Shown piece after piece: positions 45,731-62,163 of a stretch of DNA of 64,000 bases (position 1 is its first letter; each line of letters starts with the position of its first letter). The position numbers and the translations under genes were made by a program. The stretch lies in IMG/VR virus record IMGVR_UViG_3300025012_000027, positions 62,001 through 126,000 of that record. One strand, given 5' to 3'. The notes under the pieces were generated by a model that did no database searches, had not been told where the DNA came from, and saw nothing but the letters and a program-made list of their open reading frames with translations.

Positions 45731-45832
45731 TGGTTGGTTGGGCTCTTAAATAGGCTCTACGGAATAACGTGTTGAATTCATGATTTAGGTTTATACTCAT
45801 AAAACGGATTAACGTGTAGAAAAGGATTCGAT

Positions 45833-46480
45833 ATGACAAAAGAACGCTTCGGGGTGGCTGAACTCATCCTTCGGGAGGTTTGCGAGATGGACCCCGATGA
45901 CCCGGAGAAGAGCGACACCATTTGTATTGATGTGTCCACCTTGAAGCGGGTTATTGACGCCCACATTAGTGAGACGGACGAGCGCCACGGGCTGGACAGC
46001 GACACTCGCGTCTGCTTCTATGAGCAGGATTTTTACGTCCTGTCGAACTTCAGCTCGTTCAATCTTGTTGGCGGGTTCTATGGAAGCCCCCAGTCTGATG
46101 GCATCACATTCGCTACCAGTGAGCACGCCTATCACTGGCATAAGTTCCAGCCGACCGACAGCGATTTGGCCGATGCCATTCTGTTCGCGCCGTCTGCTCA
46201 CGACGCCTTTAAGCTTGCCGAGCGCAACAAGGTAAATCGTTGGGACCGATGGGACGAATTCAAGGTGGAAATCATGCGCGACATCCTGCGAGCCAAAGTG
46301 ACCCAGCACGAATACGTGCGCCGAAAGCTCCTGGCGACAGGCGACCGCGAACTGGTTGAGAACTCGTGGCGCGATGACTTTTGGGGGTGGGGACCAACCC
46401 AGGATGGCGCAAACATGCTGGGCAAGCTTTGGATGGAAATCAGAGCCGAAATCCGCGCAAAGGATACCCCTGACAATTGA
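45833..46480 (+). CDS. NADAR (YbiA-family) hydrolase
   Basis: LSNF, TSEHAYHWHKF, AKVTQH, LLATG, LVENS..D.FWG, GANMLGKLWMEIR. Confidence 0.92.
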   Translation: MTKERFGVAELILREVCEMDPDDPEKSDTICIDVSTLKRVIDAHISETDERHGLDSDTRVCFYEQDFYVLSNFSSFNLVGGFYGSPQSDGITFATSEHAYHWHKFQPTDSDLADAILFAPSAHDAFKLAERNKVNRWDRWDEFKVEIMRDILRAKVTQHEYVRRKLLATGDRELVENSWRDDFWGWGPTQDGANMLGKLWMEIRAEIRAKDTPDN

Positions 46481-46483
46481 TGG

Positions 46484-47950
46484 ATGACTGACATCCTCGA
46501 CCTTAAAGGCTGGACGGTGCTCTCCAAGTCTCAATCCGATGGTGAATACGTGATTGAGGCCGAGTACACCATTCAGCCCGCCAACTGCCCAAAATGCGGG
46601 GTTGTTGACACTCCATACAAGCATGGCGTAAAGCCCATCAGGTATCGCGACAGCCCCATCAGGGGTTCCGCTGTGGTCATCCTGGCCAACGTCCAGAGGT
46701 ACAGGTGCAAGCACTGCAAGGAGACGTTCCTTCAGCCATTGGAAGGCATTTACCCTGATATGAGGATGACACAGCGCTGTGTTGAGTACATTGAAACCCA
46801 GTGCCTTCGGGACACCTTTGTTCGGATTGCCGAGCATATTGGCTGTGATGACAAGACTGTAAGGACCGTTGCTGGCACTTACATTGACTCCATGAATGCC
46901 AAGTTCAAACCCTGGCTTCCTGAGTGGCTGGGCATTGATGAAACACAGATTGACGGCGAACTCCGATGCATCATCACTGATGTGGTCAACCGTAAGCCGG
47001 TGGATATGCTGCCCAATCGTGACAAGGTGTCGGTCACGGCATGGCTGTACCAGTTCAAAGACCGGCGCACCGTCAAGGGATTGGCCATTGACATGTGGCG
47101 TCCATATAAGGATGCAGCCCAAGCAGTGTTCCCCGGCCTGCCTGTAGTCATTGACAAGTTCCATGTAGTCAAGATGGCCAACAAGGCTTTGGAGGACATT
47201 CGCATTGCCCTTGCCAAAGACCAGCCCAAGGCAGTCGGCAAGGACTGGATGAGGCGCAAGGCACTGCTGCGGATGCGGTACAAGAATCTGGATGAAAAGG
47301 GCCGGTTTGCCCTCAGCATGTGGCTGGACAACGAACTGGCTCTCAAAGTCGCTTACGACCTCAAAGAAGCCTTCTATGACATCTACGATGCCCCTACCAA
47401 GGCAGAAGCTGGAACCCGGCTGGATGCTTGGCGCAACTCCATTCCCGCAACCATGAAGAAGGGGAAAAAGAGCTTTGCGCCCCTCATTACCGCCACGAAG
47501 AACTGGCGAGAAGAGATTCTTGCCTTCTTTGACCACCCCATCAGCAACGGGTACACAGAGGCTCTGAACGGCGTTGCCAAGGTAACCAATAGGCAAGGCA
47601 GGGGCTACAGCTTTGAAGTCCTCAGAGCCCGCGTTTTGTTCTCCAAGATTTCCAGAGTCCCTGTTACTGAAGAGGATGAGGTAACGGAAGTAGAGATGCC
47701 AGAACCCGAACAGGTTGAGGTAGTCATCCATAACCCAGCCCGTACCGTGCGCCACATGCTGCTTTACAAGTACAAGAACAGGTGTCAGTCCTGTCTTGGA
47801 GTGTTTCCCCCATCCGAGCTTTATGTCGCTCGAATGGGTGTCTTCCTTGAGGATGAACCAATGAAAAACAGGACGTTGATGTGTGCCCCTTGCAAAGAGC
47901 GTTTCCACACAGATGGAATTAAGCATGTTCATTCAACTTCCACACCTTAA
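46484..47950 (+). CDS. ISL3-family transposase with C-terminal Cys-rich extension
   Basis: CPKCG...RYRCKHC, LGIDE, IDMWRPY, VIDKFHVV, SNGYTEALN, GRGYSFEVLRARVL. Confidence 0.95.
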   Translation: MTDILDLKGWTVLSKSQSDGEYVIEAEYTIQPANCPKCGVVDTPYKHGVKPIRYRDSPIRGSAVVILANVQRYRCKHCKETFLQPLEGIYPDMRMTQRCVEYIETQCLRDTFVRIAEHIGCDDKTVRTVAGTYIDSMNAKFKPWLPEWLGIDETQIDGELRCIITDVVNRKPVDMLPNRDKVSVTAWLYQFKDRRTVKGLAIDMWRPYKDAAQAVFPGLPVVIDKFHVVKMANKALEDIRIALAKDQPKAVGKDWMRRKALLRMRYKNLDEKGRFALSMWLDNELALKVAYDLKEAFYDIYDAPTKAEAGTRLDAWRNSIPATMKKGKKSFAPLITATKNWREEILAFFDHPISNGYTEALNGVAKVTNRQGRGYSFEVLRARVLFSKISRVPVTEEDEVTEVEMPEPEQVEVVIHNPARTVRHMLLYKYKNRCQSCLGVFPPSELYVARMGVFLEDEPMKNRTLMCAPCKERFHTDGIKHVHSTSTP

Positions 47951-54398: not shown

Positions 54399-54629
54399 AT
54401 GCTCAATACATATTATCTATACGGTTCTCCCGTATTATTTCTAGCACTGTTTTTGTATACGCTATGGAGAGAAAACGATGAGCTGCTCGTCTGTGACGTG
54501 TTCTGGGGGTTAGTTGTGGCATGCATCCCAGTACTCAATTTATTTTTCGCTGTGATGTGTCTAAGTCAACTGAGTAACGGTGTATGGTTGCAGGTTATTA
54601 TTAAAAGGAGCAACTCTAATGAAAACTAG
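54399..54629 (+). CDS. Small membrane protein
   Basis: CIPVLNLF. Confidence 0.55.
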   Translation: MLNTYYLYGSPVLFLALFLYTLWRENDELLVCDVFWGLVVACIPVLNLFFAVMCLSQLSNGVWLQVIIKRSNSNEN

Positions 54630-54849
54630 AATCACAGATTTATTGCAACAGTCTGGGTTTGTTCTATGGGAAAACGAAGCATGGGGACCAGGCCCACATA
54701 TGGTTGATTGGTCGAGTGACTATGCCGTCGAAATGGAACGATTCATTGCAGCACTGGTATCCGAATGTGCTTTGATCGCAGACAGCGATACATGTAAGCC
54801 ATATGCGACATATGGAGAACGGATCAAAGCACATTTTGGCATCAAGTAG
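54619..54849 (+). CDS. Hypothetical protein, MNxRIxEL family
   Basis: AAGGAG RBS; RFIAALVSEC...IKAHFGI. Confidence 0.65.
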   Translation: MKTRITDLLQQSGFVLWENEAWGPGPHMVDWSSDYAVEMERFIAALVSECALIADSDTCKPYATYGERIKAHFGIK

Positions 54850-54913
54850 TTTTTAAACGTAAATATACATAGTTGGGAATAGATCCCGACCAAACACTAT
54901 AAGAGGATTTCTT

Positions 54914-55939
54914 ATGCCAAAGCAATACAATACCCTAGTCTATATCGGTCGGTTTCAACCAGTGCACCTGGCACATTTGGAAATTATTCGTCGCGCCACT
55001 GAAATGGCAAACCAAGTGATTATTATCATTGGTAGCGCAGACCAACCGCGAACATACAAAAACCCATTTACTCGTCAAGAACGAGCGGCTATGCTGCATC
55101 CCGTGTATAATATGGGGGATATGGAATCTGCTATTCGGATTGAAGACGTAACCGATTCAACGTACAATAATCTTGCATGGGCTACCAAAGTACAAGCAAT
55201 CGTTGCAAAACATAGCTATGCAGGTGATTCTATTGGCATCATAGGACACGAAAAAGATGAATCAACATTCTATTTGAGAATGTTCCCTCAATGGAAGTTT
55301 GAAGATGTTGATCTGATCGAACCACTAAATGCAACGGACATTCGAAATTTGTACTTCAAACGATCTGGGAACATGAACTTCATTAAGAGCGTGGTCCATC
55401 ATTCAACGTTTGACTTCTTATCGCAGTTTGCCCATACCCCTGCATTTGAACAGATCATTCGTGAGCGTGAGTTCATTGACTCATATAAAATGCAATATGC
55501 ATCGCTGGCTTACCCGCCTATATTCGTAACCACCGATGCCGTCGTGCTGTGTTCCGGCCACGTACTGATGGTTAAGCGTAAAGCAGAACCTGGCAGGGGA
55601 TTGTGGGCGCTCCCAGGGGGCTTCTTGAATGCCTATACCGATGCAAGCATTCAAGCTGCTGCGATTAGAGAGCTTAGAGAAGAAACTGGCATCAAAGTTC
55701 CTGCCCCTGTATTGGTGGGTAGTATCGTAGACTGTAAAGTGTTTGATGCTGTTGACCGAAGTGCTAGAGGTAGAACAATAACCCATGCTTTCAAGATAGT
55801 GTTGCTTGATGGCATGCTACCAAAGGTGCGTGGGGCGGATGATGCCGAGAAGGCAAAGTGGGTCCCATTGGCAGACGTGAAACGATCTGAATGCTTCGAC
55901 GATCATTATGAAATTATTGCGACAATGATTGGCGCGTAA
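54914..55939 (+). CDS. nadM: Bifunctional NMN adenylyltransferase / Nudix ADP-ribose pyrophosphatase (NadM-Nudix, NatV-like)
   Basis: IGRFQPVHLAH, KNPF, Nudix box LPGGF...AAIRELREETG, GADDA, DHYEII. Confidence 0.95.
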   Translation: MPKQYNTLVYIGRFQPVHLAHLEIIRRATEMANQVIIIIGSADQPRTYKNPFTRQERAAMLHPVYNMGDMESAIRIEDVTDSTYNNLAWATKVQAIVAKHSYAGDSIGIIGHEKDESTFYLRMFPQWKFEDVDLIEPLNATDIRNLYFKRSGNMNFIKSVVHHSTFDFLSQFAHTPAFEQIIREREFIDSYKMQYASLAYPPIFVTTDAVVLCSGHVLMVKRKAEPGRGLWALPGGFLNAYTDASIQAAAIRELREETGIKVPAPVLVGSIVDCKVFDAVDRSARGRTITHAFKIVLLDGMLPKVRGADDAEKAKWVPLADVKRSECFDDHYEIIATMIGA

Positions 55940-55991
55940 CAAGTCTAGGGGATAGACTCCTAGCAATTTTAACTTTAAAGGAACTTTAAAA

Positions 55992-57425
55992 ATGAAAAAC
56001 TCAATTCTATTGAACACAGACAGCTACAAAGTGAGCATGTGGCAGCAGTACCCACAAGGCACCGAATATGTGTATTCATACATCGAATCTCGAGGCGGCG
56101 AATACGCTGAAACTGAATTCTTGGGCGTCCAAGCACTTGCGAAATATCTATCAATCCCCATCACGCTAGATGACATTGACCTCGCCGACAGATTATGGAC
56201 TGCTCACGGCGAACCATTCAACCGAGCTGGATGGGAATACATACTCAACACATATCAAGGTCGACTGCCAATTCGTATTCGGGCGGCAAAAGAGGGGCTC
56301 ATTATCCCAACTAAAAACGTTCTGTGTACCATTGAGAACACAGATCCGAAATGCTATTGGCTCACTACGTGGGTTGAGACTGCCGCCCTTCGAGCGATCT
56401 GGTATCCAACTACCGTTGGCACTATTTCGTGGAACATCAAACAGTTCATTCTAAAATACTTGGATAAATCTGGCGACCCGTCTACTATTGCTTTTAAACT
56501 GCATGACTTTGGTGCTCGCGGTGTTTCTTCTGAAGAATCTGCTGGTATTGGCGGTGCAGCACACCTGGTCAATTTCATGGGTACGGACACTATGTCTGGC
56601 ATTCTTCATGCTATGTCTGTTTATGGTGGAGACGTATGTGGCTATTCTATCCCAGCAGCAGAACACTCTACCATAACGAGCTGGGGGCGAGACAACGAAG
56701 TGAACGCATATCGTAATATGCTTACGCAATTCGCAAAGCCTGGATCGGTCGTCGCAGTTGTTTCTGACTCTTACGACATCTACAACGCATGTAATCTGTG
56801 GGGAACAGAACTCAAGCAACAAGTGATCGACAGTGGAGCGACGGTTGTTATTCGCCCGGATTCAGGTGATCCGATCGAAGTGTTATCAAAGATGCTGCGT
56901 ATTCTTGAAGAACGATTTGGTGCACCGAAGAACGCCAAGGGGTACAAAGTTCTTAACAATGTACGAGTGATTTGGGGCGACGGGATCAACATCCAAAGTC
57001 TCGAAGCAATTCTTACGCATATGGTCGACTTCCTCGGGTACAGCGCAGACAACTTCGCATTCGGCATGGGTGGCGGACTATTGCAACAATGCAATCGAGA
57101 CACCTTGAAGTTCGCTATGAAGGCGTCCGCAATTGGGGTTCGCGAGACTAGACTCGATGAGTTCTGCGGGGATGAAGATTACACGAGCTCGGTGGTGTGG
57201 CGTGATGTGTTCAAAGATCCAATCACTGATCCCGGCAAATCGTCCAAGAAAGGTCGAGTAACACTTTGGGAATCTGGCGGACACTATGAGTCCAGCGTAA
57301 CTCAGCCGACTAAATGGACCGATCGTGGATTTGAATGGAAAGAAGCTATGGAAACATACTTTGAAGACGGCGAAGTAACGTTCACGCAAACGTTTGAGCA
57401 AGTGCGATCAAACCAACATATCTAA
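55992..57425 (+). CDS. nadV: Nicotinamide phosphoribosyltransferase (NAMPT)
   Basis: TDSYK, LHDFGARG, SIPAAEHS, VSDSYD, IRPDSGDP, WGDGI, RDTLKFAMK. Confidence 0.97.
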   Translation: MKNSILLNTDSYKVSMWQQYPQGTEYVYSYIESRGGEYAETEFLGVQALAKYLSIPITLDDIDLADRLWTAHGEPFNRAGWEYILNTYQGRLPIRIRAAKEGLIIPTKNVLCTIENTDPKCYWLTTWVETAALRAIWYPTTVGTISWNIKQFILKYLDKSGDPSTIAFKLHDFGARGVSSEESAGIGGAAHLVNFMGTDTMSGILHAMSVYGGDVCGYSIPAAEHSTITSWGRDNEVNAYRNMLTQFAKPGSVVAVVSDSYDIYNACNLWGTELKQQVIDSGATVVIRPDSGDPIEVLSKMLRILEERFGAPKNAKGYKVLNNVRVIWGDGINIQSLEAILTHMVDFLGYSADNFAFGMGGGLLQQCNRDTLKFAMKASAIGVRETRLDEFCGDEDYTSSVVWRDVFKDPITDPGKSSKKGRVTLWESGGHYESSVTQPTKWTDRGFEWKEAMETYFEDGEVTFTQTFEQVRSNQHI

Positions 57426-60327: not shown

Positions 60328-62163
60328 ATGGCTTCAATCACCGAGATGGACCGTAACATCACAGCGGCATATCAGAAAATTAACTTTCGCAAAATGGTCT
60401 TCGAGAGTGTCGTGAATTCGGTGTTCTTGGAAACCGCCGATGAAGAAGAAACCACAAAGTTTCTAAGCTGGAAACAAGAAGTTCAAAAGGCAAATCCCGG
60501 AAAACGCCTGTTGTTCAAAGGCCGTATCGAGAAGGGCGCTAAAGGCGACCTAAACACAGTATCAGCCGAAGAAAGCGGTAAAGATCGTTCGTATGGTGTT
60601 TGGGATCACGATGAGAAAAAAGGCCATTTGTTTACGGAATCTGACGAATCTGGGTATTCTTCATTCCTACAAACAAAGCAGGGTGATGCACCGGTACCCA
60701 TCGAGCCAGAAAATGTGGCCTCTGATCCAGTTGATACAATCTCCATGGAAGTTCCATTCCTCATTCGAGCTATGGAGTATGCCAGAGAAGATGCAAAAAC
60801 TGATGAGTCGTTGCATGTAGCAACTGAGAAGATGATTAAGTTTAGCAAAGCAGGTCCTTTAACGATGGCAGCGTACGATGAAATCTTTGGGGTTGATCAT
60901 GCAGGGCCAGATGGGGATGGCGATGCTGACGATAAAACAGAAATGTCAGAAGCTACAAGAGAGCACCAAAATTGGGAAGTTAAAAGTGCTGTATGGAAAG
61001 ACGAGGGTGGGTATAGAAAACCTACCGACGTAAAAACGCACAGCGTCCGATCAGACCGTGCATATAGAGCAGTGCAAAAAGCCGAAAAACAATATGAGCC
61101 TGGCCGTGAAACTTGGTCTGTCCATGCGTTAGGAAATGTCGCGGAAGGCGTTGGCGATAAAGAAGAGGTGGCTGAAGGCTTTAGCGATACCGATACTGTA
61201 TTTTTAACCCCGCCGACCGGTAAGTTGGCGCATCTTCGGTATAATCTTTTCAGCGAAGGTTCGCCAGAAGATCATGCAGCCGCTATCAAATACCATTCCA
61301 AAGATGCAGATAGAGCTACCTCGCAAAAGTCAGCATTCCATGATATGCGCGCAAAGATGCATTCCGACTGGTTAGATGGGCGTCAAGTGACATCTGAAGG
61401 CTATGGCGAAGACGATGGAATTTTTATGGGTGCTAAGGTGTATCACCGAGACCATCAGTCAGGCGAACCGTTCAAAGTTGTAAAAATCGTCGATGATCAA
61501 CGAGTTGGAGTAGTTGACGACCACGGCAATACTACAGATTTGTTTATTAATCAATTAGTTCCAGCGAAAACAGCCGGCGATAAAGAACTTGAAGAAGCAT
61601 ATTCATATCCGGATGCTAAAGTTAGTCTGATCGCAGACCCAGAAGAACGAGCCAGAATCAATGATCTGAAATCGTTGTATTCGACGTTCGGCGGTGTAAA
61701 GGGTATTAAACGTGCTCGACACTTCGACAAAACTGGACTGTTAAAGGCAACGGCTAAACAAAAGGATCTATTGTTTCGGATGACAGATGAGACGGGCAAC
61801 GTTAAACCCAAACAAGATACGGTTACTGAATCTAAGGGGTCCACCGAGCCGTTGTCGGTCGGGGATAATGTGACACTACGAAATCCAAATTCTTCATTGT
61901 ATGGAGCATCCGGAAAGGTTGATCGGATAGATGGTGATCAGGTGTACGTTTCGGGAAAAAACATGATGACATTACCCCACGATCGGAAGCATGTCCAACT
62001 TGTTTCCAAGCCATTGGCAGTAGTTGAATCACTAACTGCTAACGATAGTATCGACAAATGGATCGGTGATTTCATTGCGTCCAAAGATCCAAAGTTCGAA
62101 GGTAAGTCTAAAGAAGACCGTCGCAAAATGGCAGTTGGTGCGTTCTATGGAGCAAAGAAATAA
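60328..62163 (+). CDS. Large late multi-module protein, probable protease-processed internal head protein
   Basis: TAAATA at 60294; repeated hydrophobic-x-E junctions; C-terminal WIGDF..SKDPKFEGKSKEDRRKMA.GA. Confidence 0.6.
   Translation: MASITEMDRNITAAYQKINFRKMVFESVVNSVFLETADEEETTKFLSWKQEVQKANPGKRLLFKGRIEKGAKGDLNTVSAEESGKDRSYGVWDHDEKKGHLFTESDESGYSSFLQTKQGDAPVPIEPENVASDPVDTISMEVPFLIRAMEYAREDAKTDESLHVATEKMIKFSKAGPLTMAAYDEIFGVDHAGPDGDGDADDKTEMSEATREHQNWEVKSAVWKDEGGYRKPTDVKTHSVRSDRAYRAVQKAEKQYEPGRETWSVHALGNVAEGVGDKEEVAEGFSDTDTVFLTPPTGKLAHLRYNLFSEGSPEDHAAAIKYHSKDADRATSQKSAFHDMRAKMHSDWLDGRQVTSEGYGEDDGIFMGAKVYHRDHQSGEPFKVVKIVDDQRVGVVDDHGNTTDLFINQLVPAKTAGDKELEEAYSYPDAKVSLIADPEERARINDLKSLYSTFGGVKGIKRARHFDKTGLLKATAKQKDLLFRMTDETGNVKPKQDTVTESKGSTEPLSVGDNVTLRNPNSSLYGASGKVDRIDGDQVYVSGKNMMTLPHDRKHVQLVSKPLAVVESLTANDSIDKWIGDFIASKDPKFEGKSKEDRRKMAVGAFYGAKK

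Follow-up and report, generated by a model that had tools for sequence, protein, structure and literature searches.

In a T4-like phage genome, two genes of NAD+ salvage, nadM-Nudix and nadV, are each preceded by a short hairpin with the same ATAGA loop but a different stem, which raises the question of whether the two genes share a regulatory element and, if so, at which level it acts. The DNA analysed (the window, a stretch of 64,000 nt) is positions 62,001 to 126,000 of the 216,115-bp single-contig virus record IMGVR_UViG_3300025012_000027, which carries T4-type genes, including a gp23-family capsid protein, both topoisomerase II subunits, a baseplate tail-tube cap, RNA ligase and RegA. A first-pass annotation of the window, made from the sequence alone, had noted the two hairpins and proposed that they form a shared RNA operator bound by a protein or sensing an NAD metabolite.

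The two hairpins upstream of nadM and nadV

To determine whether the two hairpins are present as described, their positions, pairing and downstream genes were re-examined. The results showed that the first hairpin, GTTGGGA-ATAGA-TCCCGAC, lies at 54872–54890 (+), 23 nt before the ATG at 54914, and that the second, CTAGGGG-ATAGA-CTCCTAG, lies at 55945–55963 (+), 28 nt before the ATG at 55992. Each has seven pairs including one G-U, and each folds as the minimum-free-energy structure (−9.5 and −8.9 kcal/mol, z −3.7 and −2.5). Pfam searches confirmed that the first gene (54914–55939, +; 341 aa) encodes an NMN adenylyltransferase fused to a Nudix domain (NadM-Nudix; CTP_transf_like, PF01467, plus NUDIX, PF00293) and that the second (55992–57425, +; 477 aa) encodes the nicotinamide phosphoribosyltransferase NadV (NAMPT_N, PF18127, plus NAPRTase, PF04095). 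In the whole genome only three of 526 ATAGA sites are flanked by seven or more pairs, against about 0.55 expected by our estimate, and two of the three are these. On its own this is only modestly unlikely, and related sequences were therefore examined.

NadM relatives in viral contigs (67% and 57% identical) carry an ATAGA-loop hairpin at the same distance from the start codon, and the same hairpin precedes their nadV, although the stem sequences are entirely different. Eighty nadV loci fetched by protein similarity alone gave 34 distinct exact-loop copies, of which all but four precede NadM or NadV at 15–30 nt. The alignment also showed a feature that the first-pass annotation had missed: each hairpin (H1) is followed by a short G-poor linker and a second, weak A/U-rich hairpin (H2) that holds the Shine–Dalgarno (SD) sequence in a 5-nt loop. 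In the nadM leader, H1 has a closing A-U pair, where most relatives have G-C, and is followed by the unpaired G-free linker CAAACAC (54891–54897) and by a 7-bp H2 (54898–54916) with the SD GGA in the loop GGAUU and the AUG (54914–54916) in its 3′ arm. In the nadV leader, H1 is closed by G-C and preceded by the conserved AAGU, the linker is CAAUUUUAAC (55964–55973), and H2 (55974–55990) reads UUUAAA-GGAAC-UUUAAA, with the AUG 1 nt after the stem. An SD-in-loop hairpin of this kind is rare in this genome, occurring at only 10 of 317 gene starts, two of which are these.

To test whether both helices are supported by covariation, RNAalifold was run on a plain MAFFT alignment that was not fitted to any structure. 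Both hairpins were predicted, and 13 of 14 pairs carry compensatory changes; because the sequences had been selected for H1 pairing only, the covariation of H2 is independent evidence. On the covariance model (CM)-fitted alignment, which leans towards the model, H1 and H2 are 91% and 95% paired, respectively, all 13 pairs change on both sides, 0 of 500 shuffles reach the observed score, and slid controls collapse. The first-pass annotation had also suggested that AGTCTA can alternatively pair with TAGACT in the nadV copy. This pairing is present in the window (55942–47 with 55953–58) but is not conserved, with 50.6% of cells paired and 498 of 500 shuffles doing as well.

Distribution of the leader among phage and cellular loci

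To determine where the leader occurs, a CM built from these copies was used to search 627 kb on both strands. The search gave 102 hits at E ≤ 1, all on the gene strand. The downstream gene is NadV in 59 cases and NadM in 31, the rest being small ORFs that head an operon ending in nadM, the C-terminal half of a split nadV, and a few others. Among viral nadV loci chosen only by protein similarity, the leader lies directly upstream in 57 of 76, comprising 33 of 35 at 60% or more identity, 17 of 20 at 55–59%, 7 of 14 at 50–54% and 0 of 7 below 50%. Whole-record scans of 21 phage records (about 4.7 Mb) gave 41 hits at E ≤ 1, of which 39 lie in NAD-salvage loci and the other two are weak (E 0.6 and 0.9). 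An unbiased scan of the viral collection for the loop plus an SD string, with no stem required, returned 121 matches; the 19 that can form both stems are all in NAD loci, against only 7 of the other 102. Thus the motif is present in homologous leaders and is confined, apart from the two weak hits, to NAD loci in the records scanned.

Within the window, searched with filters off, only the two sites rise above noise, at 55939–55993 (58.5 bits, E 3e-9) and 54866–54918 (28.3 bits, E 0.003), and they are the only such sites in the 216-kb genome, which excludes a genome-wide repeat. A third hit at 54561–54622 (12.7 bits, E 3.8), with AAGUC…GCA flanks but a 16-nt loop, lies inside the upstream coding region just before the 76-aa ORF that precedes nadM, and is probably due to chance or possibly a decayed copy.

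The leader is also found on other arrangements of the pathway. In a 519-kb T4-like phage, a variant copy with a longer loop that begins AUAGAGA heads an operon of a 50-aa ORF, pnuC (PF04973) and a nadR-like gene (AAA_28) (contig L095, 1500–3054, equal to ~189394–190950 of contig C1 of that phage record, G005), and relatives of that phage (L201–L203) have AGAGA-loop copies directly before pnuC. In contig L082 (3001–5685), nadV is split into two ORFs by an inserted 378-aa ORF with a weak SegE-type GIY-YIG homing endonuclease match (23.4 bits, just below the cut-off), and the C-terminal half carries its own near-identical copy of the leader; a second contig, L266 (~1490–2230), shows the same leader before a C-terminal nadV half. 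Small ORFs of unknown function (phrog_33851, phrog_12218 and a 155-aa ORF with no family) repeatedly sit between the leader and nadM (L008, 650–1361; L010, 1362–1682; L032, 756–1223; L327). They are presumably co-regulated and are candidate unrecognized members of the NAD module. In L012 (1854–2084), a strong hit (34.6 bits) precedes a 76-aa ORF made largely of a HSFI repeat, in a contig where nadM lies downstream of nadV and has its own leader. In L008, a 238-kb phage contig, a PrkA-type serine protein kinase gene (PF08298 and PF06798; 4513–6453) lies immediately downstream of nadV.

The leader is not universal, however. Some close nadV relatives (76–77% identity) have lost H1: in L006 and L013 (~2526–2566 and 2949–2989) an internal deletion leaves only CCTAGG, and in L007 (~2925–2977) an unrelated 7-bp hairpin with a UUA loop replaces it, although H2 is kept in all three. 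The cultured nadV phages RsoM2USA, VS1, RB16 and L9-6 lack the motif, RsoM2USA keeping only an H2-like hairpin. Of 80 cellular nadV loci only three carry the element, all top-identity MAG contigs (5.6 kb, 10 kb and 135 kb) that we infer to be phage-derived. Searches against Rfam 15 gave no hit in the window; at E ≤ 10 only snoZ247 and DUF2815 RNA appeared, both far below the gathering score, and twenty related loci gave only tRNAs. No paper describing the element was found in the literature library searched, and a search with the loop sequence gave nothing relevant. Taken together, these results indicate that a real, structured RNA element, specific to NAD salvage in a clade of uncultured T4-like phages, is very likely.

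Sequence features and inferred promoter context

The leader is about 55 nt long and recurs in about 90 distinct copies. It consists of H1 (7–9 bp), an unpaired G-poor linker of 8–15 nt and H2 (five to seven A/U-rich pairs, with GGA or GGAG in a 5-nt loop), with the AUG 0–5 nt after H2. The H1 loop is AUAGA in about 90% of distinct copies (78–81 of 89 distinct rows for the loop columns) and is usually closed by G-C. Divergent lineages have AGAGA, AAAGA, ACAGA, AGUGA, ACGGA or AGGGA, and a few copies have the six-base loops GAUAGA or AAUAGA, so that the fixed bases are A1, G4 and A5 (consensus A-N-R-G-A). In the four genomes where a non-AUAGA nadV loop could be compared with its nadM leader, the nadM loop is also non-AUAGA, though the two need not be identical, and where nadV has AUAGA, nadM does too. 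This fits one shared reader of the loop, although common descent could also produce it.

To examine where transcripts might begin, the sequences upstream of H1 were compared. Many relatives have near-consensus sigma-70-like promoters whose −10 element ends at a modal 10 nt before H1, and many also, or instead, have TAAATA ending at a modal 6–7 nt before H1 (3–9 nt before H1 in 29 of 91 related leaders). In this genome TAAATA is enriched 20–60 nt upstream of same-strand gene starts (52 of 131 sites against about 6% expected) and is probably the late-promoter core, whereas 0 of 10 sites of the classical TATAAATA lie upstream of genes. One TAAATA (54860–54865, +) lies 6 nt upstream of the nadM H1. 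From these promoter-like elements, H1 is inferred to begin within about 0–5 nt of the mRNA 5′ end. The nadV copy in the window has no promoter of its own and is probably internal to a nadM–nadV transcript, which weakens a purely 5′-end role. Elsewhere in this genome, two perfect palindromic hairpins with a CTAG centre and A/T runs on both sides lie between convergent genes (C1, 22843–22864 and 54412–54435 of the whole record, outside the window) and look like bidirectional terminators. A 488-aa ORF (window 46484–47950, +) matches a PHROG transposase family (phrog_5749, E 4e-136) and is overlapped by a 707-aa ORF on the opposite strand (45809–47932, −).

Possible mechanisms and comparison with known systems

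A short hairpin with an invariant loop, a freely varying stem and a pathway-specific distribution is the signature of a recognition site. The reading we prefer, held about as likely as not, is that one trans-acting factor, most likely a protein of phage or host, reads the H1 loop and, bound about ten bases from the weak SD hairpin, sets ribosome access and/or 5′-end-dependent decay, so that all NAD-salvage mRNAs are regulated together. The interpretation in the first-pass annotation is supported as far as computation can take it, but no partner was identified. In five complete motif-bearing phage genomes, host proteins not being included, no CsrA (PF02599) or ANTAR (PF03861) domain was found and RegA (PF01818) occurs in only two, and no conserved regulator gene lies beside the loci, the neighbouring small ORFs having no Pfam family and only PHROGs of unknown function. 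This leaves a host protein, an unrecognized phage protein, one of the salvage enzymes acting on its own mRNA, or a ligand.

A riboswitch, in which the bare leader binds an NAD-pathway small molecule (NAD+, NMN, nicotinamide, ADP-ribose, NR or PRPP) and changes SD access, is possible but unlikely. The association with one pathway on three kinds of transcription unit (nadV, nadM and pnuC–nadR), the conserved loop nucleotides on covarying stems, the SD in the adjacent helix and the absence of a co-occurring protein in the genomes searched favour it. However, only three to seven nucleotides are fixed (A1, G4 and A5, plus the closing pair), with no internal loop, junction or supported pseudoknot; pairing of the AUAGA loop with downstream UCUA(U) was seen, by eye, in only a subset of leaders (for example L002, L034 and L001). 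The H1 and H2 loops are not complementary, H1 and H2 do not compete for pairing, and no mutually exclusive fold is conserved. Comparably doubtful is a factor-independent expression module, with H1 as a 5′-terminal stabilizing hairpin, the linker as a ribosome standby site and H2 presenting the SD. The position of H1 immediately downstream of promoter-like elements, the unpaired G-poor linker and the leader copy acquired by the C-terminal half of a split nadV, which needs its own translation start, agree with this, but a generic stabilizer should also appear on other early or late genes, whereas the CM hits are confined, apart from the two weak ones, to NAD loci in the 4.7 Mb scanned, and needs no invariant loop, and the nadV copy in the window lacks its own promoter.

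Two further possibilities appear very unlikely. The hairpins follow stop codons closely (22 nt after the stop at 54847–49 and 5 nt after the nadM stop), and intergenic hairpins are common in this genome, so that they might be 3′-end elements of the upstream genes lying near the next start codon by coincidence. Yet neither was called by a terminator scan, neither has a U-tract (the tails are CAAACAC and CAAUUUUAAC), and in relatives the hairpin follows promoters, is tied to H2 and the start codon, and stays at a fixed distance from the downstream AUG whatever gene lies upstream. A DNA operator for a dimeric NrtR- or NadR-like regulator would fit an inverted repeat next to promoter-like sequences of NAD genes, and bacterial NAD regulons appear to use such operators. 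However, a palindromic operator would show conserved half-sites and a free centre, whereas here every stem position varies with compensation and only complementarity and the asymmetric centre are kept. Moreover, G-U or U-G occurs 44 times in H1 against 11 A-C or C-A, an asymmetry expected only for the sense-strand transcript, all 102 hits have one orientation, and cellular nadV loci, apart from the three contigs mentioned above, lack the element.

NadV plus an NMN adenylyltransferase form the phage pathway NARP2, which rebuilds NAD+ after NAD-depleting defence (bioRxiv 10.1101/2024.02.11.579819). Phages appear to regulate this pathway as a unit, including the pnuC–nadR uptake branch, and the leader is a candidate new RNA family and a marker for annotating NAD regulons in uncultured jumbo phages. 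A more speculative and unlikely possibility is that the leader is a new minimal sensor of NAD state, either a riboswitch or an RNA bound by a salvage enzyme in a substrate- or product-dependent way, letting T4-like phages raise synthesis of NadV, NadM and PnuC–NadR when NADase-type host immunity depletes NAD+. It would then be the first regulatory RNA dedicated to a phage counter-defence pathway.

In form, the nearest resemblance is to the ANTAR-regulated dual-hexaloop RNA (EutV, NasR and AmiR targets), with two short tandem hairpins in a leader, A1 and G4 in the loop, recognition by the loop rather than the stem, and some mycobacterial sites overlapping ribosome-binding sites (PMC8934654). 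Here, however, the H1 loop is mostly a pentaloop with a third fixed base (A5), the H2 loop is the SD (GGAGU or GGAAC) rather than A-x-x-G, no terminator is overlapped, and no ANTAR domain was found in the five phage genomes. H2 alone resembles a textbook CsrA/RsmA site, with A-GGA in the loop of a short hairpin over the SD, a second hairpin 10–20 nt upstream, and a few H1 variants reading ACGGA or AGGGA; GGA is nearly invariant in H2, but about 90% of H1 loops are AUAGA and have no GGA. The guanidine-II (mini-ykkC) riboswitch offers a probable precedent for ligand sensing by two very small hairpins, but its loops, probably ACGR on both hairpins and kissing each other, are absent here, and the genes are those of NAD salvage, not guanidine export. 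The class I (nadA motif) and class II (pnuC motif) NAD+ riboswitches are likewise cis-regulatory leaders of NAD-metabolism genes, but no Rfam match was obtained at the gathering score or at E ≤ 10, and the architecture here is two simple hairpins with no bulged-stem domains and no pseudoknot, confined to phages. Functionally the element is closest to loop-specific translational operators such as the MS2 and PP7 coat-protein hairpins, the T4 gp43 operator and the eukaryotic IRE–IRP system, in which a short hairpin with a sequence-specific loop on a variable stem, at or near the translation start or the 5′ end, is probably read by one protein, the IRE likewise coordinating several mRNAs of one pathway; the loop sequence and organisms, however, are unrelated, and the element is a member of none of these families.
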